A stretch of DNA of 64,000 nt from Macrostomum hystrix (taxonomy: Eukaryota > Animalia > Platyhelminthes), in NCBI GenBank assembly GCA_950097015.1, contig CATNEN010000029.1, positions 2,604,001 to 2,668,000 of the forward strand. Direction: 5' to 3'. Below the pieces are notes generated by a model. It ran no database searches. It was not told the DNA's origin and worked only from the letters and a program-made list of their open reading frames with translations. Both the position numbers and the translations under genes were made by a program. How positions within the stretch are numbered: the stretch's first letter is position 1; each line of letters starts with the position of its first letter. Below, one piece after another: positions 815 to 24,846 of this stretch.

Positions 815-1430
815 GGAATCTGCCCAATAATCTCTCAAAGGAATCGTCGCTTCAATCGCTTTGTTAGTGTAGGAATCTGCCCAAGAATCTCTCAAAGGAA
901 TCGTCGCTTCAATCGCTTTGTTAGTGTAGGAATCTGCCCAAGAATCTCTCAAAGGAATCGTCGCTTCAATCGCTTTGTTAGTGTAGGAATCTGCCCAAGA
1001 ATCTCTCAAAGGAATCGTCGCTTCAATCGCTTTGTTAGTGTAGGAATCTGCCCAAGAATCGCTCAAAGGAATCTTCGCTTCAATCGCTTTGTTAGTGTAG
1101 GAATCTGCCCAAGAATCTCTCAAAGGAATCGTCGCTTCAATCGCTTTGTTAGTGTAGGAATCTGCCCAAGAATCTCTCAAAGGAATCGTCGCTTCAATCG
1201 CTTTTTGAGTGTAGGAATCTGCCCAAGAATCTCTCAAAGGAATCGTCGCTTCAATCGCTTTGTTAGTGTAGGAATCTGCCCAAGAATCTCTCAAAGGAAT
1301 CGTCGCTTCAATCGCTTTTTGAGTGTAGGAATCTGCCCAAGAATCTCTAAAAGGAATTGTTGCTTCAATCGCTTTTTGAGTGTAGGAATCTGCCCAAGAA
1401 TCTCTCAAAGGAATCGTCGCTTCAATCGCT
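815..1430. repeat. 57-bp minisatellite, ~10.5 copies
   Basis: Unit GAATCTGCCCAAGAATCTCTCAAAGGAATCGTCGCTTCAATCGCTTTGTTAGTGTAG; explains the 19-aa periodic ORF 791..1408. Confidence 0.95.
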
Positions 1431-1888
1431 AAATAAAATGATCATACAGTAAAGGTGAACCAACATCACGTGACTTAGTCAGCCAAATTTACACTGTAGT
1501 GTATGTAGTACCCAAAAGCCAATGAGTGATGCAGCATTTAGGGAAATTCTTGCACCTTTACCACTATGTCTTTCGACATACAGTGAAAAAATCTATAAAA
1601 AAATCAATATTAACAGATGAAAAACTGCACAATTTGCGCATGCTCGTAAGGAGCAAAACACGAAACAAAATACAGGTGATAATTATTGTATCCAGTGCAC
1701 AAAAAAGCATTTCGGCAATCGACGAAATTACATCATCGTTGACAGCAAACAATAAATAGACAAATCAGATTTGCGTCACAAAAACTCGCATTGTCATGTC
1801 CGCATGTTTGGAATTATTAATTTAGAGAACAATGACGCAGGCAATAATCAGGGCCGCTTAACTTCCCCAAGACTACACTCCGTGCAGC

Positions 1889-4800
1889 CTAGTAAGTTTT
1901 CTGCCGGGTCACCTGTCCAGAATGTGAGCCGTGGTGGGCCGGCATGTCGTGCGCATCTTCTATAGCGTTACGACGAAGAAAGTACTTGCAGTAGATGAGC
2001 ACGCCAGCGCCGATAAGTAGGCCGGCGCCGACAGCTGAGAATACCGCGATCAGCACAATGGCCAGCGTGTCCAAGCCAACGCCTCCAGTGCCTGGGTCAA
2101 CGGTTGACGTAGGCGGCGTGGTAGAAGGAACTATCGGTGCAGATGTTGTATCAACGTCGGGCGAAGGATTTGTCGGTCCAGTTGACAGGGTTGACCCGGT
2201 CGAGTCAGTCACGGGAGGACGAATGGTAGAAGTAGACTCACCAGTCACCTGTGTGGGAGTGGAATCGGCCTGTGAGTCAGTGGAAGTCCGCGTTGTCGGG
2301 GAGGTCGTCGGTGTTGTCTCTGTCGGGGTAGTCATTGTCGTTGTCATCGGCGGGTCCAGCTGGCTGATGCAATGGGGCGAGTCGATGCACGGAAGCGCCT
2401 GGTCCCAGAAGGCGCAGTTCTGTCCGCGGTAGACGTCCTCGACGTATCGCAGGGGCGACGTGGCGTTGTCGCCGTCTCCGGGGTCCCGCAGCAGCAGCAC
2501 TCGTTGACTGGCAGCGTCGTATGCCTCCCAGCGCGGACTGCCGTTCTCAGCGAAATCCAGCAGGTTGCGGACCAGGAAGGCCGATAGCTGGGCGGGCACC
2601 TCGCCGAGTGGCTTCGCAGGACCGGCGGGCCGGCCCATGAGGATGTGGGCGTCGTCGACTGCAGGACGGGGTGGTCAGGAGGAGCGGTCAACTAATAAAA
2701 CAGAATGAAGCCAGTGATGGCTGGTGAGTGAGGCCAGTGATGGCTGGTGAGTGAGAGCACCCCTACACAAAAGGCAGTCACAAGCAGCTCAGCTCACACA
2801 GAGTGGCTCCAATCAGGGGGTCGCCACTCGGTGGGGCCTCAGCGGGCGCAGCCAGCAGGAAGCCGAACACGGGCTCGGGCTGCTGGCGAGCGCTGGCAGC
2901 TGCCATGAACTTCCAGGACGGGCAGCTGAAGTGTCGGTCGCCCAGCGCCTGCGCCAGCAGCCGAGCGTCGCTGCCGACACCAGGACTACCAGCACCCGGG
3001 TCCGGGAACCTGGCGAACCGGTTGGCAGCCGCCTGCAGGCCGACGGGCGACAGCGACTCGGCGAAGCGGGGGAAGTGGCGAAGAGAGTCGGCCAGGAGCT
3101 GAGCGGGCGGAATGAGCGGCTGAGATGCAGATGCGGAAGATACACAACACAACAGCGTCAAGGAACAGAGGTACACAGGTACACAGGTACACAAGCGCAC
3201 AGGTACACAAGCACACAGATACACAAGCACACAGGTACACAAGCACACAGATACACAAGCACACAGGTACACAAGCGCACAGGTACACAGGTACACAGGT
3301 ACACAAGCGCACAGGTACACAGGTACATAAGCACACAGATACACAAGCACACAGGTAAACAAGCACACAGATACACAAGCACATAGATACACAAGCACAC
3401 AGGTACACAAGCGCACAGGCACACAGGTACACAAGCACACAGGTTCACAAGCACACAGGTACACAAGTACACAGGTACACAAGTACACAGGTTCACAAGC
3501 ACACAGGTACACAAGCGCACAGATACACAAGCGCACAGGTACACAGAAAACCTCATACAGAGCACACTCTACTCACTGTCTGCAGCTCGTCACGAGTCAT
3601 ATTCTGCAGCTGCTGGCTGCTGAGCAGCATTCGGAGCAGGGCGTTGCCAGGCGCCGCCACACCGCCCAGCAACAGCGGAGGCAGCGGAGGCAGCGAGTCG
3701 GTGGCCCAGGGTTCCGAGTTCAGGAAGTCATTGTCCAAGACCGGCCCGAAGGCGATGAACGGTGCAGGGAGTCGAGCCTCGTTTAGCTGGAACTCGGCGG
3801 CTGCGCTGACGATGTCGGAGACGTTAAGGGCTTGCAGGCAGGCCAGCAAGGACTTCGTGGACCCGAAGGTGTTGCATTGCAGCGAGGCGGCTGCGGGAGA
3901 GGCGCGAGACAAGATTTAGGGCTGCAGTGCACTGCTTATCCCCTGATGATTTTCACATCCTCCAATCCCAGTCACGAGTCAGCTGCTCCCAGTACCAATA
4001 TGCTGATTCCCTGATGCAAATGCTTACATACTAATTCCCTAATCCCTATCTGCATGTCCCATCCCCACATTCCTATCTTTATATCCCATACCCACATCCC
4101 TATCTGCATATCTCATCCCCACATCCCTATCTGCATATCTCCACATCCTTATCTGCATATCCCACATCCATCATCCCTATCTGCGTATCCCATCCCTCAT
4201 CCCTATCTGCATATCCCATCCCCACATCCCTATCTGCATGTCCCATCCCCACATCCCTATCTGCATGTCCCATCCCCACATCCCTATCTGCATGTCCCAT
4301 CCCCACATCCCTATCTGCATATCCCAATTCCCACATCCCTACCTGCATACCCCATACCCACATCCCTATCTGCATATACCAATCCCATGTAAAACACCCA
4401 GCTCCTGGCTGAGCTGAGCACACCTGTGAAGTTCGAGTGCAGCTGCTGGACGCTGTCTGTTCTGGGCGATACCAGGTAAGGCATGTTGGGCGACCCTGAC
4501 AGCAGCACAGCTCGCTGGAATTGTGACTTCCCAGCCAGAAGGTGGAAGCCGACCGAGGCGGCGCCCGACTCCACGCCGATCAGGGTGACCTTCGAGGAGG
4601 AGCCGCCGAAACTGCGGATGTTTCTTCCGCTCACCCACTCAATGACCATGGCCTGGTCTCTCAGTCCCAGGTTTGCACTCACAACGCCCGGAATCCAAAG
4701 GAAGCCGAGCGGTCCTGCGGGCCACATTTTCGGTTGTGATTTCGAGAGCTACTACTAACAGTAGTGCTGATAGAGCACTGATCTCATACTAGATAATTTT

Positions 4801-7800
4801 AATAAATAATATTTATTCATAAAGAGACTGGCACAGGTAAGAAAGTAGATAGACTGACTGACACAGATGGGTAACACAGGAGAGTAACAGGGGGGAAGAG
4901 ACAGTAACAGGTTAGGGAGAAACAGTAACAGGTGGAGAAGGGACAGTAAGAGGTGGGGAAGAGACAGTAACAGGTGGGGAAGAGACAGTAACAGGTTGGG
5001 GAGAGACAGTAACAGGTGGGGAAAGAGACGGTACCTAATGGGGAAGAGACAGTAACAGATGGGGAAAGAGAAAATAACAGGTGGGGAAGAGACAGTAACA
5101 TGTAAGAGTCGCACCCAGTCGGTAGGCAGCCGTGACCACCACTGCATCACCGAAGTCCAGCACGTGGCTGCCTCGCCAGCGGTCGTCTGCAGCGTCGCCA
5201 GCCTCGAAGAAGCCACCGTGCAGAAAGAGCAGCACTGGCAGGTTCGTCACAGTGACTTCAGCAGTCGCGGGCGTCCACAGGTTCATGTAGAGGCAGTCCT
5301 CCGAGGTGTCGAGGACTTGCCCGGACGACGGATGTCCGAACTGGACGCAGGCGGGCTTCGGACTGATGGCCACGTAGGTCTGAGGAGAAGCTGCGGCGTG
5401 AGAGCACAGTTGAAGCACAGTGAGAACACAGTTTAAGCACAGTTTGAGCACAGTTGAAACACAGTTGAAGCACAGTTTGAGCACAGTTGAAGCACAGTGA
5501 GAACACAGTTGAAGCACAGTTTGAGCACAGTTGAAGCACAGTGAGAACACAGTTGAAGCACAGTGAGAACACAGTTGAAGCACAGTTTGAGCACAGTTGA
5601 AGCACAGTGAGAACACAGTTTAAGCACAGTTTGAGCACAGTTGAAACACAGTTTGAGCACAGTTTGAGCACAGTTGAAGCACAGTGAGAACACAGTTTAA
5701 GCACAGTTTGAGCACAGTTGAAACACAGTTTGAGCACAGTTTGAGCACAGTTGAAACACAGTTTGAGCACAGTTGAAGCACAGTTTGTGCACAGTTGAAG
5801 CGCGCTTTGAGCACATTGAGAACTAATTTAAGCACAGTTTGAGCACAGACCAGACAGCATGGTTAGAGAACAGTGAAAACACAGTAAGACAATAGTGAGC
5901 ACACAGTAAGAACAAGGTGAGAACGCAGTGAGAACAGAGTGAGCACACAGTGAGAACATTATAAGATACCAAAAGAGCTCAGATCATAGAGTCAGATTCA
6001 CCAAAGTGCAGCAGCTTGAGCTGAACTCACGGAGTACATCCAGTTTTTCTGGTGGTTTGAATCGCCGGTCTCCGATTGGCGGCTTTGCGTAGGGCAGGCC
6101 GAGAAACTGCGACATCACTTTGCCAGCAGGTGTCCTGATTGTCTGTCCAATTGTATCTCCGTAGCCAATCACATTGATTGAAAAGTTTCGCAGCACCGTG
6201 TTAGACACGGGCTTCGGCAACGACCAGTGCTGCTGCTGCTGCTGCTGCTGTGGCATTGTCCTGGAAGTTTTCGTTTCCAGCGCCGGCCGTGGCGTTGCGG
6301 GGCCGGACAGAGCGTTGGCCAGCGGCATCTCAGCGGTCCAGAGCGGGCAGCGTCCGGGCTCGAATGCGAAGCCACCGGTTGACAGCTTGGCGGAGTTGTT
6401 GGCATTCGACTCAGCGCTGAAGCGCATGAACTCGGAGATGGAGACACTGCTGGCCGACCAGTCAGCACCGGGCACTGCGGGATCGGATTTAAGGCTGGGA
6501 AATCCAACTGTCACTCCCGCACCTCAGCTGTCACTCACGCACCTCAACTGTCACTCACGCACCTCAGCTGTCACTTCCTCACCTCAGCTGTCACTCCCGC
6601 ACCTCAGGTGTCACTTCCTCACCTCAGCTGTCAGTCCCGCACCTCAGCTGTCACTCCCGCACCTCAGCTGTCACTCACGCACCTCAGCTGTCAGTCCCGC
6701 ACCTCAGCTGTCAGTCCCGCACCTCAGCTGTCAGTCCCGCACCTCAGCTGTCAGTCCCGCACCTCAACTGTCACTCACGCACCTCAGCTGTCACTTCCTC
6801 ACCTCAGCTGTCACTCCCACACCTCATCTGTCACTCACGCACCTCAGCTGTCAGTCCCACACCTCAGCTGTCGTTCCGAATTCTTCAATCTCAGTGGTTT
6901 CGCACAGCACTTGTCACTGTCACCTGGCACCAAGTAACCGAAATTCGCAAGCCTACCGCCAGCAGTCACGAAGGCGGCCAGGTGCCGTGACATCAGTCGA
7001 GCCAGACTCCTGTGCTCTGCCGGATAGTTCGGACGCAGCAGCGGCTCCCCTAGCAGGTAGGCCACGTCTGTCGCCGCCTTCTCTGGCTCAGTCGGGTCGA
7101 TGTCCAAGTCGAGCAGGTACATGAAAACCTCCGCTCCGCCACTGCTCAGCAGCTCGCTGGTGGCGAGCCATGCTGGACAGGCCACCCCGAAGTCGGACAG
7201 CGCTCGCGCCAGCGTCGACTGGACGGAGGCTCCGAAGGCAGCGTGTGGCCAGTCGGACAGGGCCACGCGGAGGAACCGCCGACCGGAGATTGACGTGCCT
7301 CCGCCTTCAGCGTGCAGGCGGGGAAACTGCCCGAGCTCTCTGTCCAGCATCTAGGAATGAACGGCAGGTGATGGGGATGAGAACTCTGTCCAGCATCTGG
7401 GAATGAACGGCAGGTGATGGGGATAAGGACTCTGTCCAGCATCTGGGAATGAACGGCAGGTGATGGGGATGAGAACTCTGTCCAGCATCTGGGAAAGAAC
7501 GGCAGGTGATGGGGATGAGAACTCTGTCCAGCATCTGGGAATGAACGGCAGGTGATGGGGATGAGAAATATGTCCAGCATCTGGGATGAGGATGGTGATG
7601 ATGAGGATGAGGATGCAGGTTATCGGGATAATCTAAGAAACTCACAGCCTCGAAGTCGGTCTTGTTGACGCTGTCCCAGTCGACTCGTCCCAGAAGTCGC
7701 AGCGCGCGCTTCGCCAGCGCCAAGCCAGCGCCCGAGCTGGCCCCGATCAGAAGCGAGCCGTTGAAGCCACCCCCGCGCCAGCGCGCGTCCGGCAGCTTCT

Positions 7801-8752
7801 CCGAGGCGTTGAAGCTCGGTGCGAATCGACCTGTGCCGTTGACATCGTCGCGAAGCAGCGCTGCCTCAGCGTCCAGCAGCGATTGCAGCGACTGTTGGCG
7901 GAGGCATTCTAGTGACAGCCGACTCCCTTCGGCGACGCAGCCGAGACTCTCAGCGAACCGGAGGTCGAGCTCGGCGGCCACCTCGCTGGAAGCTGACCAG
8001 GCCATCGGTGCTTTGATCGAGCCGCTCATCATGATGACGCGCGAGAAGCCCGGACTGTCCCCGACGACGCCGATCGAGTGTAGGCCGACAGCTCCGGCGG
8101 CGGACGGTCCGTGGCCAGCCAGCGAGACCCGGCTCGGGTCGCCGCCGAATACGCCGATCGCCTCTCGTAGGAACCGCAGCGCCAGGCGCTGGTCGAGCAG
8201 GCCCGCGTTCAGGCCGGCCGGCAGGTTGCCAAGGACGCCTGTCCGGCTGCCGACCGTCGCCAGGACGACTCCGCTGGCTGCGCCGTCGATTCCGGCGGCC
8301 AACGCGTCGCCGTCCTCGTGGCCCACGATTTCGTCGTCGAAGTCGGTGGAGCCTCCGAGCAGCAGCGCCAGCACCGGCCGCTGGCCTGAGAGGTCCGGAG
8401 TTCGAATGCTCACGCGGAGAAGCAGATCCTCAATTAATGAGCCGCCTGGCTCGTCTCCGGTGGCGTTTAGCTTGCAGTCTGGCTGATCGAACTCGGTAAA
8501 CGGCTCCGGCGCGGCGAAGCGCCTCAACCCGACCGGCGCCTCCGCGTACGGCACGCGCAGAAAGCGAAACAGCGGCCTCTCCTCACCGCTGATCGTCACG
8601 TTCAGCTCGGAGCCCACGATGGTGCAGTTGCGAATTTTCACCTTGACCTCTCCAATCACCTGCCGCTGAGCCTCCGCCAACATCGGCGACAGGGCGACGG
8701 CTACGGCGACAGAGACGGCCGCAACAACAGTGACTACGGCAACGCCAGTCAT
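1889..8752 (-). CDS. Tandem double cholinesterase-like (non-catalytic, neuroligin/CLAM-like) type I membrane protein, short-tail copy; 8 exons 8752-7646, 7350-6957, 6474-6031, 5390-5115, 4714-4424, 3890-3577, 3119-2798, 2658-1889; ~1305 aa
   Basis: Signal peptide MTGVAVV...AEA. Two carboxylesterase folds ([16 protein letters not shown] / [37 protein letters not shown] / [13 protein letters not shown] / CAFW). All seven introns are GT-AG with matching phases and the summed length (3918 nt) is divisible by 3. Thr/Ser stalk, TM helix, ~30-aa tail ending RQKTY. Confidence 0.88.
3165..3546. repeat. GTACACAAGCACACAG-type minisatellite in intron 6 of the minus copy
   Basis: Tandem 8/16-bp units; source of the LCACV/HTGTQ ORFs. 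Confidence 0.95.
4025..4386. repeat. CCCACATCCCTATCTGCATAT-type minisatellite in intron 5 of the minus copy
   Basis: Tandem units seen directly. Confidence 0.9.
4880..5100. repeat. ~21-bp AACAGGTGGGGAAGAGACAGT minisatellite in intron 4 of the minus copy
   Basis: Tandem units seen directly. Confidence 0.9.
5403..5850. repeat. 11-bp GCACAGTTTGA-type minisatellite in intron 3 of the minus copy
   Basis: Tandem units seen directly. Confidence 0.95.
6508..6875. repeat. 20-bp GCACCTCAGCTGTCACTCAC minisatellite in intron 2 of the minus copy
   Basis: Tandem units seen directly. Confidence 0.95.
7337..7620. repeat. 46-bp minisatellite spanning the intron 1/exon 2 junction of the minus copy (6 acceptor copies)
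   Basis: YAG|ATGCTGGAC recurs at 7580, 7534, 7488, 7442, 7396, 7350. Confidence 0.92.
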
Positions 8753-9382
8753 CGAGATCTGCTGAGATCTGATTGGTCAGTCCGACCTGCGCTCTGTGCT
8801 TGTCCGCAGTGCGGATGTGAGTCCGATTTCAGTGACGGTAACGCCCTGTTTATGCTTTTGCACCACCCTGTCTTGCGAATTCTGGCTAATTCTGGCTATT
8901 TTCTGGCATCCTACGCCTTGCAGGAACCGCCTACTTTTTTCTCTTCTTAGTCCCTAAGCCCAGATAAGATTATATCCCTATGCTGGCTGGTCAGGCTTTT
9001 AGTTCGGGGGGCTAATCGTTGACTAGAAATGCAAACCTGATTCTTGTGCACACCGGCGCTTGTGTGTTATATCGCAGTAGGCTGAGATTTCTGAGTAGCA
9101 GATAACACAGCAACAGTACTTGTTGGTGCAATAGTTCTGCTGATATTCGCCATGCCCAGTGTACGAATGTGCATGCAGTTTTAGATCTGCACAGCGATAG
9201 ACAGGGACCATGCTATTTGCGGATATTATTGCTAAATTTCGAATACTGCCGTGTCTCCTAGCAACCAAAAAGTAAACAGTGGCAATTTTTTCCGTCTTTT
9301 TTGTGCATTTTCTTTGGGGTTCATTTTTTCAAAGAAAGAATATTCTAAAAATGCTATTTTATGTTTTAGTGGCACTTATTAA

Positions 9383-9930
9383 AAACCCGTCAGAATCCTT
9401 CAGATCCTTCACAAACCCGTCAGAATCCTTCATTTCCTTCACAAACCCGTCAGAATCCTTCAGGTCCTTCACAAACCCGTCAGAATCCTTCAGGTCCATC
9501 ACAAACCCGTCAGAATCCTTCAGGTCCTTCACAAACCCGTCAGAATCCTTCAGGTCCTTCACAAACCCGTCAGAATCCTTCAGGTCCTTCACAAACCCGT
9601 CAGAATCCTTCATTTCCTTCACAAACCCGTCAGAATCCTTCATTTCCTTCACAAACCCGTCAGAATCCTTCAGTTCCTTCACAAAACCGTCAGAATCCTT
9701 CAGGTCCTTCACAAACTCACCATAATCCTTCAGGTCCTTCACAAACCCTTCAGGTCTTTCACAAACCCGTCAGGTCTTTCACAAATCCGTCAGAATCCTT
9801 CAGGTCCTTCACAAACCCATCAGGTCCTTCACAAACCCGTCAGAATCCTTCAGGTCTTTCCTAAACTCACCAGAATCCTTCAGGTACTTCTCAAACCCGT
9901 CAGAATCCTACAAGTCCTTCATAAGCCACC
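9383..9930. repeat. 30-bp minisatellite (AAACCCGTCAGAATCCTTCAGGTCCTTCAC) in the palindrome spacer
   Basis: Tandem units, degenerating towards 9930. Confidence 0.95.
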
Positions 9931-10478
9931 TAAAATCCTTTAGGTTTTGGTCTCTGAAAATACTACTTTAGGTAGGCTGTGCAGCAGTTCAGCATTAAAA
10001 CTCCATGTGTGACTCAATGGCATTCGGCGCACACATCGAAAAAGAAAGATATAATAAGAGTCGCCATAAAACTCAGTCGCAAGCTCCGCGACGGGAAGCT
10101 ATACAGGACCACGGTTTGGCTCAGCGGCCTGAGTTGTTGGCCTTATCTACTCACAAATTAAGCCGAAGCTAGTTTCAACACTCAGCAAAGCACAAGCAGG
10201 TCGCCTTCATGACAGATTTCTCCACACACTGAGCAGCATTTAGGCGTAATCTAATCAGCAGAGCAACCGGGGAAAACAGCAGGCAAGCAGTGTTGCGGGA
10301 GGTCGGAATCGAATGCAAAATAATAAATAGCGTTCAAAGGGAGTGTTTTCAGAAAAATTATTTAAGGCTGGACTTGTGCGAACAGGGCGTTACCGTCACC
10401 GAAATCGGACTCACATCCGCACTGCGGACAAGCACAGAGCGCAGGTCGGACTGACCAATCAGATCTCAGCAGATCTCG

Positions 10479-13400
10479 ATGACTGGCGTTGCCGTAGTCA
10501 CTGTTGTTGCGGCCGTCTCTGTCGCCGTAGCCGTCGCCCTGTCGCCGATGTTGGCGGAGGCTCAGCGGCAGGTGATTGGAGAGGTCAAGGTGAAAATTCG
10601 CAACTGCACCATCGTGGGCTCCGAGCTGAACGTGACGATCAGCGGTGAGGAGAGGCCGCTGTTTCGCTTTCTGCGCGTGCCGTACGCGGAGGCGCCGGTC
10701 GGGTTGAGGCGCTTCGCCGCGCCGGAGCCGTTTACCGAGTTCGATCAGCCAGACTGCAAGCTAAACGCCACCGGAGACGAGCCAGGCGGCTCATTAATTG
10801 AGGATCTGCTTCTCCGCGTGAGCATTCGAACTCCGGACCTCTCAGGCCAGCGGCCGGTGCTGGCGCTGCTGCTCGGAGGCTCCACCGACTTCGACGACGA
10901 AATCGTGGGCCACGAGGACGGCGACGCGTTGGCCGCCGGAATCGACGGCGCAGCCAGCGGAGTCATCCTGGCGACGGTCGGCAGCCGGACAGGCGTCCTT
11001 GGCAACCTGCCGGCCGGCCTGAACGCGGGCCTGCTCGACCAGCGCCTGGCGCTGCGGTTCCTACGAGAGGCGATCGGCGTATTCGGCGGCGACCCGAGCC
11101 GGGTCTCGCTGGCTGGCCACGGACCGTCCGCCGCCGGAGCTGTCGGCCTACACTCGATCGGCGTCGTCGGGGACGCCGGGGACAGTCCGGGCTTCTCGCG
11201 CGTCATCATGATGAGCGGCTCGATCAAGGCACCGATGGCCTGGTCAGCTTCCAGCGAGGTGGCCGCCGAGCTCGACCTCCGGTTCGCTGAGAGTCTCGGC
11301 TGCGTCGCCGAAGGGAGTCGGCTGTCACTAGAATGCCTCCGCCAACAGTCGCTGCAATCGCTGCTGGACGCTGAGGCAGCGCTGCTTCGCGACGATGTCA
11401 ACGGCACAGGTCGATTCGCACCGAGCTTCAACGCCTCGGAGAAGCTGCCGGACGCGCGCTGGCGCGGGGGTGGCTTCAATGGCTCGCTTCTGATCGGGGC
11501 CAGCTCGGGCGCTGGCTTGGCGCTGGCGAAGCGCGCGCTGCGACTTCTGGGACGAGTCGACTGGGGCAGCGTCAACAAGACCGACTTCGAGGCTGTGAGT
11601 TTCTTAGATTATCCCGATAACCTGCATCCTCATCCTCATCATCTGCATCACAGAATCCTCATCCCAATCACCTGCCGTTCATTCCCAGATGCTGGACAGA
11701 GTTCTCATCCCCATCACCTGCCGTTCATTCCCAGATGCTGGACAGAGTTCTCATCCCCATCACCTGCCGTTCATTCCCAGATGCTGGACAGAGTTCTCAT
11801 CCCCATCACCTGCCGTTCATTCCCAGATGCTGGACAGAGTTCTCATCCCCATCACCTGCCGTTCATTCCCAGATGCTGGACAGAGTCCTTATCCCCATCA
11901 CCTGCCGTTCATTCCCAGATGCTGGACAGAGTTCTCATCCCCATCACCTGCCGTTCATTCCCAGATGCTGGACAGAGAGCTCGGGCAGTTTCCCCGCCTG
12001 CACGCTGAAGGCGGAGGCACGTCAATCTCCGGTCGGCGGTTCCTCCGCGTGGCCCTGTCCGACTGGCCACACGCTGCCTTCGGAGCCTCCGTCCAGTCGA
12101 CGCTGGCGCGAGCGCTGTCCGACTTCGGGGTGGCCTGTCCAGCATGGCTCGCCACCAGCGAGCTGCTGAGCAGTGGCGGAGCGGAGGTTTTCATGTACCT
12201 GCTCGACTTGGACATCGACCCGACTGAGCCAGAGAAGGCGGCGACAGACGTGGCCTACCTGCTAGGGGAGCCGCTGCTGCGTCCGAACTATCCGGCAGAG
12301 CACAGGAGTCTGGCTCGACTGATGTCACGGCACCTGGCCGCCTTCGTGACTGCTGGCGGTAGGCTTGCGAATTTCGGTTACTTGGTGCCAGGTGACAGTG
12401 ACAAGTGCTGTGCGAAACCACTGAGATTGAAGAATTCGGAACGACAGCTGAGGTGTGGGACTGACAGCTGAGGTGCGTGAGTGACAGATGAGGTGTGGGA
12501 GTGACAGCTGAGGTGAGGAAGTGACAGCTGAGGTGCGTGAGTGACAGTTGAGGTGCGGGACTGACAGCTGAGGTGCGGGACTGACAGCTGAGGTGCGGGA
12601 CTGACAGCTGAGGTGCGTGAGTGACAGTTGAGGTGCGTGAGTGACAGCTGAGGTGCGGGAGTGACACCTGAAGTGCGTGAGTGACAGCTGAAGTGCAGAA
12701 GCGACAGCTGAGGTGCGTGAGTGACGGCTGAGGTGCGTGAGTGACAGCTGAGGTGCGTGAGTGACAGCTGAGGTGCGGGAGTGACAGTTGGATTTCCCAG
12801 CCCCAAATCCGATCCCGCAGTGCCCGGTGCTGACTGGTCGGCCAGCAGTGTCTCCAGCTCCGAGTTCATGCGCTTCAGCGCTGAGTCGAATGCCAACAAC
12901 TCCGCCAAGCTGTCAAACGGTGGCTTCGCCTTCGAGCCCGGCCGCTGCCCGCTCTGGACCGCCGAGATGCCGCTGGCCAACGCTCTGTCCGGCCCCGCAA
13001 CGCTACGGCCGGCGCTGGAAACGAAAACTTCCAGGACAATGCCACAGCAGCAGCAGCAGCAGCAGCACTGGTCGTTGCCGAAGCCCGTGTCTAACACGGT
13101 GCTGCGAAACTTTTCAATCAATGTGATTGGCTACGGAGATACAATTGGACAGACAATCAGGACACCTGCTGGCAAAGTGATGTCGCAGTTTCTCGGCCTG
13201 CCCTACGCAAAGCCGCCAATCGGAGACCGGCGATTCAAACCACCAGAAAAACTGGATGTACTCCGTGAGTTCAGCTCAAGCTGCTGCACTTTGGTGAATC
13301 TGACTCTATGATCTGAGCTCTTTTGGTATCTTATAATGTTCTCACTGTGTGCTCACTCTGTTCTCACTGCGTTCTCACCTTGTTCTTACTGTGTGCTCAC

Positions 13401-16400
13401 TATTGTCTTACTGTGTTTTCACTGTTCTCTAACCGTGCTCTCTGGTCTGTGCTCAAACTGTGCTTAAATTAGTTCTCAATGTGCTCAAAGCGTGCTTCAA
13501 CTGTGCACAAACTGTGCTTCAACTGTGCTCAAACTGTGCTTAAACTGTGCTCAAACTGTGCTCAAACTGTGCTTAAACTGTACTCAAACTGTGCTTAAAC
13601 TGTGTTCTCACTGTGCCTCAACTGTGCTCTCACGCCGCAGCTTCTCCTCAGACCTACGTGGTCATCAGTCCGAAGCCCGCCTGCGTCCAGTTCGGACATC
13701 CGTCGTCCGGGCAAGTCCTCGACACCTCGGAGGACTGCCTCTACATGAACCTGTGGACGCCCGCGACTTCTGAAGTCACTGTGACCAACCTGCCAGTGCT
13801 GCTCTTTCTGCACGGTGGCTTCTTCGAGGCTGGCGACGCTGCAGACGACCGCTGGCGAGGCAGCCACGTGCTGGACTTCGGTGATGCAGTGGTGGTCACG
13901 GCTGCCTACCGACTGGGTGCGACTCTTACATGTTACTGTCTCTTTCCCCATCTGTTACTGTCTCTTCCCCATTAGGTACTGTCTCTTTCCCCACCTGTTA
14001 CTGTCTCTCCCCAACCTGTTACTGTCTCGTCCCCCCACCTGTTACTGTCTCTTCCCCACCTCTTACTGTCCCTTCTCCACCTGTTACTGTTTCTCCCTAA
14101 CCTGTTACTGTCTCTTCTCCCCTGTTACTCTCCTGTGTTACCCATCTGTGTCAGTCAGTCTATCTACTTTCTTACCTGTGGCAGTCTCTTTATGAATAAA
14201 TAATTTTTATGCTCTATAGTGCTCTATCAGCACTACTGTTAGTAGCAGCTCTCGAAATCACAACCGAAAATGTGGCCCGCAGGACCGCTCGGCTTCCTTT
14301 GGATTCCGGGCGTTGTGAGTGCAAACCTGGGACTGAGAGACCAGGCCATGGTCATTGAGTGGGTGAGCGGAAGAAACATCCGCAGGTTCGGCGGCTCCTC
14401 CTCGAAGGTCACCCTGATCGGCGTGGAGTCGGGCGCCGCCTCGGTCGGCTTCCACCTTCTGGCTGGGAAGTCACAATTCCAGCGAGCTGTGCTGCTGTCA
14501 GGGTCGCCCAACACGCCTTACCTGGTATCGCCCAGAACAGACAGCGTCCAGCAGCTGCACTCGAACTTCACAGGTGTGCTCAGCTCAGCCAGGAGCTGGG
14601 TGTTTTACATAGGATTGGTATATGCAGATAGGGATGTGGGGATGGGATATGCAGGTAGGGATGTGGGAATTGGGATATGCAGATAGGGATGAGGGGATGG
14701 GATATGCAGATAGGGATGTGGGGATGGGACATGCAGATAGGGATGTGGGGATGGGATATGCAGATAGGGATGTGGGGATTGGATACGCAGATAGTGATGT
14801 GGGGATGGGACATGCAGATAGGGATGTGGGTATGGGATATGCAGATAGGGATGAGAGGATGGGATATGCAGATAATGATGTGGAGATATGCAGATAGGGA
14901 TGAGGGGATGGGATATGCAGATAGGGATGTGGGGATGGGACATGCAGATAGGGATGTGGGGATGGGATATGCAGATAGGGATGTGGGGATTGGATACGCA
15001 GATAGTGATGTGGGGATGGGACATGCAGATAGGGATGTGGGTATGGGATTGCAGATAGGGATGAGAGGATGGGATATGCAGATAATGATGTGGAGATATG
15101 CAGATAGGGATGTGGGGATGAGATATGCAGATAGGGATGTGGGGATGGGACATGCAGATAGGGATGTGGGGATGGGATATGCAGATAGGTATGTAGGGAT
15201 TGGAATGTAAAACGTTTGCATCATAGAATCAGGATCTTGGTATTGTGAGTTGCTGACTCGTGACTGGGATTGGAGGATGTGAAAATCATCAGGGGATAAG
15301 CAGTGCACTGCAGCCCTGAATCTTGTCTCGCGCCTCTCCCGCAGCCGCCTCGCTGCAATGCAATACCTTCGGGTCCACGAAGTCCTTGCTGGCCTGCCTG
15401 CAAGCCCTTAACGTCTCAGACATCGTCAGCGCAGCCGCCGAGTTCCAGCGAAACGAGGCTCGACTCCCTGCACCGTTCATCGCCTTCGGGCCGGTCTTGG
15501 ACAATGACTTCCTGAACTCGGAACCCTGGGCCACCGACTCGCTGCCTCCGCTGCCTCCGCTGTTGCTGGGCGGTGTGGCGGCGCCTGGCAACGCCCTGCT
15601 CCGAATGCTGCTCAGCAGCCAGCAGCTGCAGAATATGACTCGTGACGAGCTGCAGACAGTGAGTAGAGTGTGCTCTGTATGAGGTTTTCTGTGTACCTGT
15701 GCGCTTGTGTACCTGTGTGCTTGTGAACCTGTGTGCTTGTGTACCTGTGCGCTTGTGTACCTGTGTGCTTGTGAACCTGTGTGCTTGTGTACCTGTGCGC
15801 TTGTGTACCTGTGTGCTTGTGAACCTGTGCGCTTGTGTATCTGTGCGCTTATGTACCTCTGTGCTTGTGAACCTGTGTACTTGTGTACCTGTGTGCTTGT
15901 GTACCTGCGTGCTTGTGTACCTGTGTGCCTGTGCGCTTGTGTACCTGTGTACTTGTGAACCTGTGTACTTGTGAACCTGTGTACTTGTGTATCTGTGTGC
16001 TTGTGTATCTGTGTGCTTGTGTACCTGTGTGCTTGTGTATCTGTGTGCTTGTGTATCTGTGTGCTTGTGTACCTGCGTGCTTGTGTACCTGTGTATCTGT
16101 GTGCTTGTGTATCTGTGTGCTTGTGTATCTGTGCGCTTGTGTATCTGTGTGCTTGTGAACCTGTGTGCTTGTGAACCTGTGTGCTTGTGTATCTGTGTGC
16201 TTGTGTATCTGTGTGCTTGTGTACCTGTGTGCTTGTGTACCTGCGTGCTTGTGTACCTGTGTGCCTGTGCGCTTGTGTACCTGTGTACTTGTGTACCTGT
16301 GTGCTTGTGAACCTGTGTACTTGTGTATCTGTGTGCTTGTGTATCTGTGTGCTTGTGTACCTGTGTGCTTGTGTATCTGTGTGCTTGTGAACCTGTGTGC

Positions 16401-18589
16401 TTGTGAACCTGTGTGCTTGTGTATCTGTGTGCTTGTGTATCTGTGTGCTTGTGTACCTGTGTGCTTGTGTACCTGCGTGCTTGTGTACCTGTGTATCTGT
16501 GTGCTTGTGTATCTGTGTGCTTGTGTACCTGTGTGCTTGTGTACCTGCGTGCTTGTGTACCTGTGTATCTGTGTGCTTGTGTATCTGTGTGCTTGTGTAT
16601 CTGTGCGCTTGTGTATCTGTGCGCTAATGTACCTATGTGCTTGTGAACCTGTGTGCTTGTGTGCTTGTGAACCTGTGTGCTTGTGAACCTGTGTGCTTGT
16701 GTGCTTGTGAACCTGTGTGCTTGTTTACATGTGTACCTGTGTGCTTGTGTATCTGTGCGCTTGTGCACCTGTGTGCCCGTGTAAGTGTGTTCCTGTTTGT
16801 TTGTACGCCTGTGTGCTTGAGTCACAGTGTACCTGTGTACCTCTGTTCCTTGACGCTGTTGTGTTGTGTATCTTCCGCATCTGCATCTCAGCCGCTCATT
16901 CCGCCCGCTCAGCTCCTGGCCGACTCTCTTCGCCACTTCCCCCGCTTCGCCGAGTCGCTGTCGCCCGTCGGCCTGCAGGCGGCTGCCAACCGGTTCGCCA
17001 GGTTCCCGGACCCGGGTGCTGGTAGTCCTGGTGTCGGCAGCGACGCTCGGCTGCTGGCGCAGGCGCTGGGCGACCGACACTTCAGCTGCCCGTCCTGGAA
17101 GTTCATGGCAGCTGCCAGCGCTCGCCAGCAGCCCGAGCCCGTGTTCGGCTTCCTGCTGGCTGCGCCCGCTGAGGCCCCACCGAGTGGCGACCCCCTGATT
17201 GGAGCCACTCTGTGTGAGCTGAGCTGCTTGTGACTGCCTTTTGTGTAGGGGTGCTCTCACTCACCAGCCATCACTGGCCTCACTCACCAGTCATCACTGG
17301 CCTCACTCACCAGTCATCACTGGCCTCACTCACCAGCCATCACTGGCCTCACTCACCAGTCATCACTGGCCTCACTCACCAGTCATCACTGGCCTCACTC
17401 ACCAGCCATCACTGGCCTCACTCACCAGCCATCACTGGCCTCACTCACCAGCCATCACTGGCCTCACTCACCAGCCATCACTGGCCTCACTCACCAGCCA
17501 TCACTGGCCTCACTCACCAGCCATCACTGGCTTCATTCAGTTTTATTAGTTGACCGCTCCTCCTGACCACTCCGTCCTGCAGTCGACGACGCCCACATCC
17601 TCATGGGCCGGCCCGCCGGTCCTGCGAAGCCACTCGGCGAGGTGCCCGCCCAGCTATCGGCCTTCCTGGTCCGCAGCCTGCTGGATTTCGCTGAGAACGG
17701 CAGTCCGCGCTGGGAGGCATACGACGCTGCCAGTCAACGAGTGCTGCTGCTGCGGGATCCCGGAGACGGCGACAACGCCACATCGCCCCTGCGATACGTC
17801 GAGGACGTCTACCGCGGACAGAACTGCGCCTTCTGGGACCAGGCGCTTCCGTGCATCGACTCGCCCCATTGCATCAGCCAGCTGGACCCGCCGATGACAA
17901 CGACAATGACTACCCCGACAGAGACAACACCGACGACCTCCCCGACTTCCACTGACTCACAGGCCGATTCCACTCCCACACAGGTGACTGGTGAGTCTAC
18001 TTCTACCATTCGTCCTCCCGTGACTGACTCGACCGGGTCAACCCTGTCAACTGGACCGACAAATCCTTCGCCCGACGTTGATACAACATCTGCACCGATA
18101 GTTCCTTCCACCACGCCGCCTACGTCAACCGTTGACCCAGGCACTGGAGGCGGTGGCTTGGACATGCTGGCCATTGTGCTCATTGTGGTCTTCTCAATTG
18201 TTGGAGTGGCTCTTCTGATTGGTGGCGGATTCCTGATCTATCGATTCTACAGTAGAAGCCCGTCCAGAGGAGACACTGACCTACCAGAGCGATACCCTAG
18301 TCGAACCCAGAATCAGCAGCAGCAGCAGCAGCAGAACAATAAACCGCTTGACCGGGCCGTGGATCAAGAACCACCTCAGGCGGCGTCCAATAGGCAACGA
18401 AGTGGCGCCGACAGCGCTGACCAACGTCCAGCCAATAAAACAACTGTCCAGCCAGGAAAGCAAGAATCCACTGCCGTTGGCGCAGCGATTTATGGGTCAC
18501 TCGCTGATCAGCAGCAGCAGCAGCACACTGCTTCAGTGGATGGTGTCAATAATGAGGGCTTTTCAAGTGTTGAGGAAAGTAAAATGTAG
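10479..18589 (+). CDS. Tandem double cholinesterase-like (non-catalytic, neuroligin/CLAM-like) type I membrane protein, long-tail copy; 8 exons 10479-11594, 11965-12358, 12821-13264, 13641-13916, 14283-14573, 15345-15658, 16892-17213, 17583-18589; ~1387 aa
   Basis: Same motifs as the minus copy; phases 0,1,1,1,1,0,1 are consistent and the total is 4164 nt. Nucleophile elbows GHGPS and GVESG lack the catalytic Ser. TM helix followed by a ~115-aa tail ending EESKM. An alternative exon 3 acceptor at 12788 is in the same phase but lacks a pyrimidine tract. Confidence 0.88.
11650..11977. repeat. 46-bp minisatellite spanning the intron 1/exon 2 junction of the plus copy (7 acceptor copies)
   Basis: CCCAG|ATGCTGGACAGAG at 11689, 11735, 11781, 11827, 11873, 11919, 11965. 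Confidence 0.92.
12445..12787. repeat. 20-bp GTGACAGCTGAGGTGCGTGA minisatellite, intron 2 of the plus copy
   Basis: Tandem units. Confidence 0.95.
13490..13630. repeat. 11-bp AAACTGTGCTC minisatellite, intron 3 of the plus copy
   Basis: Tandem units; much shorter than in the left arm. Confidence 0.9.
13930..14135. repeat. ~21-bp ACCTGTTACTGTCTCTTCCCC minisatellite, intron 4 of the plus copy
   Basis: Tandem units. Confidence 0.9.
14618..15205. repeat. ATATGCAGATAGGGATGTGGGGATGGG minisatellite, intron 5 of the plus copy
   Basis: Tandem units with an internal block duplication. Confidence 0.95.
15690..16835. repeat. CTGTGTGCTTGTGTAC-type minisatellite, intron 6 of the plus copy (~1.1 kb)
   Basis: Tandem units. 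Confidence 0.95.
17255..17530. repeat. 20-bp CACTCACCAGCCATCACTGG-type minisatellite, intron 7 of the plus copy
   Basis: ~13-14 copies versus ~2.5 in the left arm (2706-2756). Confidence 0.95.
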
Positions 18590-21500
18590 GTTTTTGGAAC
18601 TTCCAAGATGTTTTAATTATGGACATTTCGCCTAAGCTTCTATGCAAAACGTTTCCCTCATTTATCACTCACGGCCTATGTCACTAGGTGTCGTGATCGA
18701 GCTATCCTGACATTAGTATGATCATTTTTGCCTCTTTTATTTCTTATGTTACTGTGCTAACACATGCATGTACATTTAACCACCCGATAAATCCAATGAT
18801 CGAGCAGTTCATCTCAAAACTTTAAACTTAAAAAAATTCCATCGCAACTGAAACGGGTCTCAATTTAGAGCCGTTTTGACCAGTTTGTCATTAGATTCAG
18901 CGGGCAATGCATATACTCGTGAATTTGCATTCTCACATGCATTCTCACATGTATAGATCAGTAAATTTTTCTGTTAGGCTGTGAATGCATTGTGGTATCT
19001 ACTCAAGTGAAATTTTCCGATTAGCTACTGCCAAGATATTATATATTCTGTTCATTGATCGATGGAAATTTGGCGTTGATCACTAAGAGAACTGTGCCGA
19101 GTTATCTTTTACCCTTGCTCATTCAATTCAGTCGCGAAGCGCTTTATGGGTTCTCACCCCTTGTCGTCTATGGCTCCATTTTATGGAGTCATCAGCGTCA
19201 CAGCTAAGTGATTCTTCACTCGAGTTTGGAGTTTTTTAAAGAAGCATGCACGACGGCACATCAGGAAATTATGGGTATTCTTAGTGCAGAACGCGAGTGT
19301 GAAATTATTGATTGCACAACTTGCTGCATCTGTTTAAACAATCGAATTTAGGAAAGTGAACTGCATAAATAGAGTTGCTTAGCTTGACTTGATCGAAAGA
19401 ATAGCCAGTCGCGCTGCTGAGACAGCAGCAAATTGAGCGTTGAATCGAAGCTACGTATAGTGCTAATAACATCCTGGCTTCATTATGTTATTTATTTTCG
19501 TTTATTTATCATCAAGCACAATAGCAACCAATAAGACATAAAATTATACTTGATTTAAGTGACTGTAAAATTGAGTTAGTCATTTGATAGATTTTGACTA
19601 GCTGCTGTGCTTTTTTATAAACAAACAAAAACAAAATTACGATATAATTTTCATAATGAAGCCATCTAGAATTCGGAGAAGACTTTTTAATTTTCCAAGA
19701 AACAAAGCGTCCTATCCTTCTTCTTCTAGAGGTCCTTAGCTTGTTTAAATCTAAAATTTGCAATCACGGTTTTATTTGAATTAAAACAACATTTTAAACA
19801 AGTAGATAACAGGTTTATTTACTGTGCACTAATGTGTACAAATATTACACATTAGGTTGTCAATTAAAAGCTAGAAATGTTTTTTTTTACTTTTAAAATA
19901 TGAGCAATAAAATTTAATATACTTGATCTTGAAGAAATGCAAGTGTACAATTAAAAAATTATTACCTAATTTGGGAAATGTCTTCTTTACTTAAATCTAT
20001 GGCAAGATACGATAAGCATAATAATTAGTCATCAGTAGAGTAGAGTAGCGATATTTCTATGGCGAAATGTTTTGCTCTAATTAGTATTATGCTTCGCTAA
20101 CAAATGCTTCATGGACTGTTTTTTTCTGTTACTTGTTTGCGTTGCTTACGTTTTATCTAGTTGACTATTATTCGTCTGCGTGCAACAAACCTAGATTCCC
20201 GAAAGATATTGATATTAACCGAGAATACTAATCAGCTTAGCTGCGAAAATCACTGCAAACAGAGCAAATATTCAAATTCTCTATTTAAGTAGAATCAAAA
20301 GCAATTAACTGAACTACCTTTGGATTTACTATAGGTAGGCCTAATATGAATAAGTATTATCTGTTCTTTTGTTCCACATATTGCAGAAGTAGCAGTGCTT
20401 ATTGACACAGTACCGTGCTGTGCCAATAACAATAACTTGCAGACACAGTACCATGCCAATTCATGCCAATAGTATGACTATTAAAGTCTTTCATGCTAAA
20501 AAGTGGGCCTTATTGCTAGGACATTTAATTGTCTTGTCTAAATGCGTAAACCTATCTGTCTAGTCTTTGACACTTTGTGTTATTAAGTGGACCTTATTGC
20601 CATTCCATTATACTGCAGCAATAGCTAGTCGCCTAGTCTGCAAGTTATTGGGATACTACTATACCATGGCAATTAGTTCTGCAATTAGATTAGGCCCCTA
20701 TAGGCCCTATGCTTGAGTTAGACCTAGCATATAGCAATGGAAATAAAAAAGGGCATAACATTTTCTGAATATGTGGTCAGGTTTTTTTTCATAAAAAAGC
20801 AGATGCAAGCTTGCATCTTAAGCCTAAAATCTAGGTGCAAATTAAAAAGTCTGGGTGCAGATTTTATCTACACCCAAAATTAGTTCTTACACAGAAAATA
20901 AAGATATTTTAATGAAATTTCAGGGCTTAAGGCAGATGTTTTACTTGAATATTTCTAGGAAATCTGTGAGCACTGCAGCCTGAAATTTGAAATGTCACTA
21001 TAGGTTTGGTAAAGTGAAAATACTAAAGATGCAAAATAAATATACTGAATAATTGAAAAGCTCAATAAGGAACAAAAAAGTTACTTTAAAGTGTTCCTAT
21101 AAATTAATTTGCACTTGCACCTTAACTAAGAAAAAAGCTGGTGCAATATTTGCATATGATTCCCAATTTTAGGTGTAAATCAGGATTTTGGGGTGCAAGT
21201 TGTTCCCAATTTACACACTTTTGTTTCCCACCCTAAATGATTTTAACATATTTTTGCACAGAATGTGATATATGTATAGAAAATATCAGCAAGGCCAGTT
21301 TCAGGAAGGCCAAGTTGAGATGAAAGAGGCACACAGTGTTACTCGATGGCTATAGTTCCCAACAGGTCTGCCAATAGCCTGATTCTGATCATCAATTGTC
21401 AACCACTTGCCTGTTAACCACTCTCTATACTTTATACTCTTTTTTATATAATTGCCCATGATTTGACTTGTTCTGCACTCTTTAGGCTCTGAAATGGGCA

Positions 21501-23527: not shown

Positions 23528-24846
23528 ATGACAACGCCGAACTCCGGTGCCGGCAGTCGGCGAGGCTCCGGAGGAGGCGGCACTCGCACGCCTGGCAGGG
23601 GAGCCGGCGGCTCCGGTGATGGCAGCCAGCGGGGCTCGCCGGGTCTGAGCGCCACTGCCAGCTGCCTGCGCTGGGCGGAGTGTCCGCAGAATCTGCTTGA
23701 CGATCCTGAAGGCGTCCTACTACTGAAGCAATTCATGGAGGACATGAATCCTTCGCATGCGCGCGCTTTCGACTTCTACTTTGCCGTGAAAGGTTTAAAA
23801 AGCGGCTGTCAGCAGCCGCAGCAGCATCAGCTAATTCGCCTTATCAATAGAAAGTACGTCAGCAGAGACGACTGCGTGCCGATCAGCGCCGCAGTTCGCG
23901 CCGCCATTCAGGCCAGGGTGCGCGCCGGAGACACAGATCCTTGCCTGTTTGACCCGGCTCTGGATGAAGTTGTTCATTTTCTCACAGATACAGTCTATCC
24001 GGCCTTTCTAAAGTCCGACTTGTATATAAACTATCTGGCCTGCGTTGGTAGCGGCGCCACCTGGCAACCCTGTCTAGCCGGGGTCGAACTCGCGACCAAC
24101 AATTCGACAGCAGCCGGCGCCTCATGTTCGCCAGCTGTGCACACTCCGCGCAGCCTGCCAACTGTGCATGAGGATCGAGAATTGCAACAGCAGCTGACTG
24201 CGGCAGTCGCAGCGGCAGCTGGGTCCAGAGCCGGGTCGGTGCCTCGATCCCGCTCATCGCCGGCGCCCGCCACCACTGGAGCGGCTGCAGCAACAGCGGC
24301 CCGGCCGGTGCTTGACTTGACCATTAAGAATCTGTACGCTACTCGGTTTCAAAGGGGACGCGCGTCTCTACCTGAGTTTGCAGGCGGCCCACAGACTGGG
24401 TGAGTATGGGGTCATTGCAGCTGATAGACAGGGAGTCTATGCTGACAGGCAGGGAGTCTATGCTGACAGGCAGGGAGTCTATGCTGACAGGCAGGGAGTC
24501 TATGCTGACAGGCAGGGAGTTTCAGCTGACATACAGACCGTACACTCCACCTGTTACCTTTGCCGGTTGTCATAGAAACCGACTCAGGTGAAGACATTTT
24601 AAGCTACTCTATTGATGAGTAAAACAGTTCAAATACAGAGGTTAAGTAAAATTTTGCACCTGTAAAATTCTATATTGTCTTCTCGTACTGGACATGTCCT
24701 CCTTTTCAGTCTAGATTTTTTCATGTCGTTTTAATTATAGGAAAAATTGCGTTGTTAAAGAAAATTGTCAGCGTGTTTAACTTTTGGAATGTCTGGCTTT
24801 TTCTCTTTCTTCTTTTCCGCTTGCTTTGCCGCCGCCGCCGCCTCTG

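Follow-up and report, generated by a model that had tools for sequence, protein, structure and literature searches.

A 64,000-nucleotide stretch of the genome of the flatworm Macrostomum hystrix (GenBank assembly GCA_950097015.1, contig CATNEN010000029.1, positions 2,604,001 to 2,668,000 of the forward strand), hereinafter the window, contains a palindrome with two head-to-head genes, denoted L and R, that encode membrane proteins with cholinesterase-like domains. Judging from the sequence comparisons presented below, L and R probably are an old pair of inverted paralogs in which the inner arms of the palindrome were recently homogenised by gene conversion, sparing the segments that encode the transmembrane (TM) helix and the cytoplasmic tail. 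In the 1,240 aligned codons ahead of the TM helix, the synonymous divergence (dS) between the two genes is 0.011, and within a few codons the proportion of differing synonymous sites (pS) rises to 0.78, so that the locus appears to be an unusually clean natural case in which the edge of a conversion tract coincides with the border of a protein domain. The initial annotation of the window, made from the sequence alone, had described two head-to-head 8-exon genes in a palindrome, and we indeed found the two arms and an intact gene in each of them. The features of the locus are as follows (positions are those of the window).

1889 to 8752, minus strand: gene L, short tail, 1,298 amino acids (aa), 8 coding exons, identified by spliced RNA contigs and an intact translation
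Coding exons of L, minus strand: 8752-7646, 7350-6957, 6474-6031, 5390-5115, 4714-4424, 3890-3577, 3098-2798, 2658-1889 (stop codon at 1891-1889)
10479 to 18589, plus strand: gene R, long tail, 1,380 aa, 8 coding exons, with the junctions carried over from L by alignment and identical splice-site sequences
Coding exons of R, plus strand: 10479-11594, 11965-12358, 12821-13264, 13641-13916, 14283-14573, 15345-15658, 16913-17213, 17583-18589
2052 to 8850, minus strand: left palindrome arm (homogenised tract), delineated by inverted-repeat scan and blastn, with 98 nucleotides (nt) 5' of the ATG, exons 1-7, every intron, and exon 8 as far as the first TM codons
10381 to 18180, plus strand: right palindrome arm (homogenised tract), delineated by inverted-repeat scan, blastn and alignment
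8851 to 10380, no strand: unique, asymmetric spacer of 1,530 nt between the two 5' ends, with a tandem array of 30-base-pair (bp) units inside it at 9383-9921
1991 to 2065, minus strand: TM helix of L, with the homogenisation boundary within the helix at 2051/2052
18167 to 18241, plus strand: TM helix of R (LAIVLIVVFSIVGVALLIGGGFLIY), with the boundary at 18180/18181
1892 to 1990, minus strand: cytoplasmic tail of L, 33 aa, no recognised motif, present in RNA unitigs that extend from below 1400 to 2109
18242 to 18586, plus strand: cytoplasmic tail of R, 115 aa (...NNEGFSSVEESKM), rich in Gln, Ser, Pro and Asn, with a YGSL sequence that matches the YxxPhi pattern and a C-terminal S-K-M
1400 to 1888, minus strand: L-specific 3' untranslated region (UTR), at least this length; a contig of run X7 goes about 465 nt further left, into a 57-bp tandem array
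2092 to 2241, minus strand: candidate exitron, 150 nt, in-frame, GT..AG, in the stalk-coding part of exon 8; the joint 2090/2241 is present in one contig of run X9 that runs on into the L-specific tail

Divergence of the two copies and the edge of the homogenised tract

An inverted-repeat scan of positions 1-24000 detected arms that are 96-100% complementary, at about 2.3-8.85 kb and 10.38-17.9 kb, and a blastn comparison of one arm with the other reaches L 2036-8850 and R 10381-18196. In a piecewise alignment of the arms outside the tandem repeats, introns included, there are 44 mismatches in 4,567 columns (0.96%). The exons differ by 0-1.35% and the introns, where alignable, by 1.06-1.65%, with dS close to the intron divergence; the earlier observation that the non-repeat parts of the introns are as alike as the exons is thus borne out (1-1.7% difference). 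Within the 1,240 codons ahead of the TM helix, there are 11 synonymous and 13 non-synonymous differences together with the two in-frame 9-nt indels that had been noticed previously, namely, an additional G-D-A at residues 231-233 of R and an additional T-T-R at residues 1164-1166 of L. The eleven amino acid substitutions of the initial annotation are all present, and the count rises to 13 with V/G at 1236 and T/M at 1240, immediately before the helix. The non-synonymous divergence (dN) of the ectodomains is 0.0048 and the dN/dS ratio is 0.43, which suggests mild purifying selection on the ectodomain sequence. With the ortholog from Macrostomum lignano used as the outgroup, the amino acid changes derived since homogenisation are 5 in L and 4 in R.

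The introns consist mostly of private minisatellites with periods of 16-46 bp (for example, 3165-3545 compared with 15690-16776, and 4042-4386 compared with 14616-15204). The copy number of these minisatellites differs up to three-fold between the arms while the adjoining unique sequence is 99% identical, and therefore array length changes faster than point divergence accumulates.

According to the nucleotide alignment, the similarity switches at L 2051/R 18181, at the third to fourth TM codon, within a few bases. The following 22 codons align in frame, with 43 of the 66 nucleotides and 14 of the 22 residues identical; in this segment, pS is saturated at the above value compared with the dS directly upstream, the corresponding proportion for non-synonymous sites (pN) is 0.16, and every replacement exchanges one of Ala, Val, Ile, Gly and Phe for another. 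The identity of the arms is accordingly younger than the duplication itself. A helix that is conserved in frame past the boundary and is saturated at synonymous sites argues for old paralogs that were homogenised recently rather than for a fresh duplication. By manual count, 19 of 29 positions are shared with the M. lignano helix by the TM helix of L and likewise by that of R, so both belong to the same gene lineage; L and R match each other at 21 of 29, and these counts fit a duplication that postdates the divergence from M. lignano.

A recent partial inverted duplication with its outer breakpoint in the last exon, in which case the L tail would be a read-through into unrelated DNA, would also account for arms that are about 99% identical in introns and exons. 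This explanation is contradicted by the in-frame homology of the next 22 codons, with the same 14 residues and saturated synonymous sites, and by base composition: the GC content of the segment encoding the L tail is 53.5%, the same as for the R tail, compared with 37% in the flank right after the L stop codon. We therefore consider a recent partial duplication to be highly improbable.

Past the helix, the initial annotation described tails of about 30 and about 115 aa with intact frames, which the present analysis finds to be 33 aa in L and 115 aa in R, both frames being open. The accompanying description of the two tails as unrelated could not be upheld. Smith-Waterman scores compared with those of shuffled sequences showed no significant similarity for any of the three pairs (L and R, p=0.39; R and M. 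lignano, p=0.06; L and M. lignano, p=0.31), and no other reading frame scored better when a frameshift relation between the tails was sought; neither relatedness nor unrelatedness of the tails is demonstrable by these comparisons. Because the exon that encodes each tail also encodes, ahead of it, a TM helix that is clearly homologous between the copies, the tails are more likely to be fast-diverged descendants of one ancestral tail.

In the most plausible course of events, a Macrostomum gene was duplicated long ago in inverted, head-to-head orientation. Recent conversion from arm to arm, or one long conversion event, then replaced about 7-8 kb in one copy by the sequence of its partner, including the last 98 nt before the ATG, all seven introns, and the complete coding sequence of ectodomain and stalk, and ended within a few bases at the first TM codons. 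Beyond this edge, the ancient divergence persists, in the form of a conserved, synonymously saturated TM helix followed by tails without significant similarity. In our view, the homogenisation is mainly a mechanical by-product of the palindrome, with the sharp edge kept since the diverged sequence past it no longer supports conversion and, possibly, also due to selection for distinct anchors and tails. The two resulting surface proteins are essentially identical outside the cell and differ in the membrane and cytoplasmic parts; they may bind the same ligand, their genes may be co-regulated from the shared spacer, and the two tails may differ in trafficking or coupling.

The spacer is presumed to be the divergent promoter region of both genes. 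A search for inverted symmetry within the spacer (8851-10380) found none, and no residual old homology between the copies could be aligned in the spacer or in the outer flanks. The 98 nt 5' of each ATG (10381-10478 and 8753-8850), which lie within the homogenised tract, are identical at 97 of 98 positions and contain a CCAAT motif about 25 nt ahead of the ATG of each gene; beyond these 98 nt, L and R each face the opposite side of the asymmetric spacer.

Transcripts and the reality of the locus

The 8-exon model was first derived from reading frames and splice sites and then corrected with RNA contigs, for which Logan contigs from four runs were aligned to positions 1400-7390. Runs X7 and X3 are RNA runs, in which the contigs skip every intron and the depth inside introns is zero. 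Junctions 2 to 7 of L are present in these runs as GT..AG joints on the minus strand (2658/2798, 3098/3577, 3890/4424, 4714/5115, 5390/6031 and 6474/6957), and junction 1 is represented by a loose contig end at 7350 that matches the end of exon 1. Compared to the longest open reading frame (ORF), the RNA contigs place the donor of exon 2 earlier (L 6957, R 12358) and the acceptor of exon 7 later (L 3098, R 16913), and both corrected junctions match the M. lignano ortholog.

Several minor features of the transcripts accompany these models. The 46-bp tandem repeat of intron 1 (R 11650-11977, L 7338-7629) includes the acceptor of exon 2 and the first 13 nt of this exon, and therefore several identical cryptic acceptors precede the real one (for example, 11689, 11827 and 11965 in R); the acceptor used in the RNA contigs is the last of the repeated ones. 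The candidate exitron has the intron ends CTG|GTGAGT ... CCCAG|G and is present with an identical sequence in R at 17991-18140; its skipping would shorten the stalk by 50 aa. In the RNA contigs of X7 and X3, position 2347 is also joined backward to 2088, with an additional T (depth 39.5 and 5.5), in the low-complexity stalk region near the 9-nt indel; this joint is probably an assembly effect. Finally, the 57-bp tandem array (about 11 copies, 811-1430) apparently lies within the 3' UTR of L.

Transcription of both tails, which the initial annotation had made a test of its reading, was detected for L by contig continuity and for R by the share of R-specific words. In X7 and X3, the L-specific unitig extends from beyond 1400, in the 3' UTR, to exactly 2109, that is, 30 nt past the last L-specific base at 2079, as expected for a break with k=31, so that the mRNA coding for the shared stalk physically runs on into the L tail. 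The L-specific mRNA was assembled in three independent RNA data sets, with a depth of 29 in X7 compared with 37 on the shared body. For the unique 3' end of R (18197-18900), 0.86-0.92 of the words are found in X7 and X3, and since these runs lack intronic DNA, R is transcribed as well. The contigs of X9 carry the L tail at about 99% identity, which is uninformative on constraint, and run X14 contains 0.14 of the L words.

These observations bear on the possibility that L is a redundant, dying duplicate with a truncated tail, the intact ectodomain of which is passively refreshed from R. Such a scenario would agree with the short, motif-free tail, with the ability of conversion to keep a decaying copy looking intact, and with M. 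lignano, which has the long tail only and a single gene per locus. It does not fit the L-specific mRNA, found in three data sets at a depth comparable to that of the shared body, the even distribution of derived substitutions between the copies, or the open frame and coding-like GC content of the tail. The TM helix of L lies outside the converted tract and yet is a clean hydrophobic helix with saturated synonymous sites. Given that this helix stayed clean through a long divergence and that the tail is coding-like in GC content, L has long been a working membrane-anchored gene, and its decay appears improbable.

An assembly artefact, that is, a false palindrome from a chimeric long read or two haplotypes joined head to head, was considered as well, because the Macrostomum assemblies from which the window probably derives were built from noisy PacBio reads with canu and required haplotig purging (PMC10468722). 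The spacer, however, is unique, asymmetric and 1.5 kb long, the arms differ by minisatellite copy number and by the 44 point differences, and the outer ends are ancient paralogs rather than alleles. Both unique outer ends are present in DNA and RNA runs from several samples and two studies (0.83-1.00 of the sampled words). In DNA run X4, probably the source DNA of the assembly, word depth is 73 on the L-unique part compared with about 140-180 on the arms, a ratio of 2:1 as two collapsed copies would give. A misassembly with a single real arm, which had been named as a way in which the initial reading could fail, is thus very unlikely in view of the spacer asymmetry, the age of the outer ends, the multiple data sets and the 2:1 word depth, and we put the chance of any artefact of this kind close to nil.

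Two cholinesterase-like domains and their relatives

Each gene product consists of an N-terminal signal-like segment, two cholinesterase-like domains, a Thr/Pro/Ser-rich stalk that starts at about residue 1145, one TM helix (1241-1265) and the tail of 33 or 115 aa. The ectodomain, previously described as a cholinesterase-like region of about 1250 aa, is cholinesterase-like as stated and comprises about 1,240 aa; the Pfam matches show two such domains per chain in place of the single one. In particular, the first open frames on both sides of the spacer match PF00135 (carboxylesterase type B) with E of about 1e-37 (2.5e-37 for exon 1), and there are further matches in exons 3 and 5, with other parts of the profile matched for the second time. 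Because the profile is covered twice and the frames run outward from the spacer, the genes are head to head and encode two domains each.

The position of the nucleophile is occupied by Gly in domain 1 and by Glu in domain 2, as shown by HMMER alignments to cholinesterases. The catalytic columns were read from a 33-sequence alignment of double-domain relatives, in which 20-21 sequences have S in the Ser columns and 21-27 have H in the His columns. A manual reading of the window protein against this alignment gives G and T at the Ser and His columns of domain 1, and E and L at those of domain 2; the respective residues of the M. lignano ortholog are G and V, and E and L. Both domains are thus predicted to be catalytically dead, with the catalytic triad lost. 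A sequence search of the PDB with exon 2, aimed at the catalytic His, returned no match. In most of the double-domain relatives (molluscs, echinoderms and others), Ser and His are kept at the catalytic columns of both domains, whereas in the Macrostomum orthologs these residues are gone from the two domains alike. Active double esterases may therefore exist in the family next to dead ones, as far as these alignment columns indicate.

A HMMER scan of 1.84 billion representative sequences with exon 1 yielded as the best match a 1,232-aa protein of M. lignano, BOX15_Mlig025559g3, with the homeolog g1. The uncharacterised proteins BOX15_Mlig025559g1/g3 (P0151, P0001) are orthologs of the window proteins, with the same two dead domains, stalk, TM helix and long tail and with an identity of 49% on exon 1 and about 60% over the full length. 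An AlphaFold2 model of the ectodomain of the M. lignano ortholog has a mean predicted local distance difference test score (pLDDT) of 76 and a predicted template modelling score (pTM) of 0.54, and one domain of the model compared with human acetylcholinesterase gives a template modelling score of 0.82-0.84. With regard to the question of whether the two domains pack as an intramolecular pseudo-dimer, which would bear on L/R heterodimers, the domains are well modelled and the pTM is just 0.54.

M. lignano has one gene at each of its two homeologous loci. Within 10 kb, neither strand carries a second copy or an inverted partner, and no short-tail form was found in the databases searched. The tail of the M. 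lignano protein is long and rich in Gln and Pro, and it lacks both features that are specific to R, YGSL and the C-terminal S-K-M. A search of 5.8 billion proteins for closer relatives with two tails returned M. lignano alone. The question of a two-tail arrangement in related species, which had been raised in the initial annotation, was thus addressed in this one species, where the long-tail form is present, as a single gene per locus.

Membrane proteins with two or multiple cholinesterase-like domains are also encoded in tunicate, bivalve, hemichordate, echinoderm and gastropod genomes and are uncharacterised. If selection is behind the pattern of the window pair, the locus would give a handle on these proteins of flatworms, molluscs, echinoderms, hemichordates and tunicates.

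Comparison with paired receptors and conversion palindromes

The initial annotation interpreted the locus as a paired receptor system. The architectural part of this interpretation stands: the genes are closely linked and head to head, the ectodomains are near-identical, apparently kept so by conversion, the TM helices and tails are different, and both copies are intact and transcribed. The signalling part does not: no immunoreceptor tyrosine-based inhibitory motif (ITIM; [SIVL]xYxx[ILV]) was found in the R tail, where the sole tyrosine motif is YGSL, preceded by A-I; the TM helix of L contains no K, R, D or E; and no immunoreceptor tyrosine-based activation motif (ITAM) is present in either protein. 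In architecture, the locus is thus similar to a paired receptor; it fails on the signalling features and has the features of a palindrome homogenised by conversion.

The closest parallel is the SIGLEC11/SIGLEC16 pair, in which about 9 kb separates two head-to-head genes and the upstream regions and ectodomain exons are 98-99% identical as a result of conversion (PMC5701461). As in the window pair, these genes encode type I receptors in which the similarity ends before the TM helix and tail, and both are expressed. The two systems differ in that the Siglecs have Ig-fold lectin ectodomains, in contrast to the pair of dead cholinesterase folds in each window protein; the window pair lacks both the ITIMs of Siglec-11 and the charged TM residue through which Siglec-16 recruits DAP12; conversion of the Siglec genes is recurrent in several primate lineages, whereas the window pair is known from one flatworm genome; and the Siglec pair functions in the context of vertebrate immune cells.

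Neuroligins also resemble the window protein, with a non-catalytic cholinesterase fold followed by a stalk of the O-glycosylation type, one TM helix and a tail, and neuroligin-2 is among the best sequence matches. Neuroligins likewise have Gly at the nucleophile position. They have one domain per chain, unlike the two tandem domains of the window protein, in which no conserved neuroligin tail motifs were found; of the two tails in the window, that of R alone ends in a class-I-PDZ-like S-K-M. With respect to genome architecture, the ampliconic palindromes of the human Y chromosome are comparable: their inverted arms enclose a unique spacer, and intrachromosomal conversion maintains near-identity of the arms in coding and non-coding DNA. 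These palindromes span tens of kb to Mb, whereas the arms in the window are about 7 kb long and the arm edge cuts through an exon, leaving the two genes with one common and one distinct part.

The possibility that L and R form a true paired-receptor system, in which selection keeps the ectodomains identical, the long tail has a signalling or scaffolding role and the short tail provides a decoy, modulator or heterodimer partner, following the logic of SIGLEC11/16 or SIGLEC5/14, has to be weighed against this background. The geometry and the conversion pattern match those of SIGLEC11/16, the boundary lies exactly at the border between ectodomain and TM helix, and the two genes have their 5' flank and spacer in common. 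Moreover, both copies are intact and expressed under net purifying selection (dN/dS as given above), with a constrained TM helix in each, and R alone has the YxxPhi match and the C-terminal S-K-M. Against these stand the lack of an ITIM, an ITAM or a charged TM residue, the long tail, which is not significantly conserved in M. lignano (p=0.06), so that no specific output is shown by conservation, and the motifs of which are absent there, the sufficiency of one conversion event to explain the data, and the fact that M. lignano gets by with one gene type. On balance, we regard a true paired-receptor system as a tentative alternative, and an unlikely one. Equally doubtful is the broader scheme, in which a paired-receptor module of double pseudo-cholinesterases would have evolved independently in flatworms, with the palindrome locking the ectodomain and selection keeping the anchors and tails apart, such that one ligand is read in two ways or L/R heterodimers are formed. 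Within such a scheme, the two proteins would bind the same ligand, would form dimers and would be under selection for identical ectodomains; "one ligand, two outputs" would be possible, a reading that the poor conservation of the tails weakens.

Conversion within an old inverted pair, the reading that we prefer, has its own weak points, which should be listed together. The palindrome is known from the assembly and from word depth and not from a long read that spans the spacer, a point that also favours an artefact. The transcription of R is read from word shares, which is less direct than the contig evidence for L, and at the 20-odd diagnostic exon sites the contigs are mosaics of L and R even in the DNA run, so that relative expression is not readable. 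The spacing of mismatches along the arms is only mildly uneven (P of about 1e-3 for the longest clean run, uncorrected for 45 intervals), and therefore one conversion event is enough: a single long event about 1% divergence ago suffices, and ongoing conversion is not shown by this spacing. Contigs from other samples are also L/R mosaics at the diagnostic sites, which assembler collapse explains equally well. The comparison with relatives covered M. lignano, which dates neither the duplication nor any recurrent conversion.

We found no publications on Mlig025559, on tandem cholinesterase-like membrane proteins, or on invertebrate paired receptors with conversion, and the locus belongs to an animal group and a protein family for which no paired receptors are described in the literature searched. 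If selection is behind the pattern, the combination of the same ectodomain with different tails would be a repeatedly evolving general solution and not a speciality of vertebrate immunity; if only palindrome mechanics is involved, the locus would still serve as a useful gauge of the activity of ectopic conversion in this genome. In practical terms, ectodomain probes, RNA interference triggers and short reads do not discriminate between L and R, a purpose for which only the segments 1400-2051 and 18181-18900 are suitable.

Several other genes were identified in the window outside the palindrome:

23528 to 24403: ORF with an RGS domain
38480 to 39055: Cu/Zn superoxide dismutase
42253 to 43878: gene with PHD and CXXC zinc fingers, syntenic with the M. 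lignano locus, 70-75% identity
52774 to 53316: fragment of an Srw-like G-protein-coupled receptor

In M. lignano, the PHD-CXXC gene is located 3 kb upstream of the cholinesterase-like gene, on the same strand.

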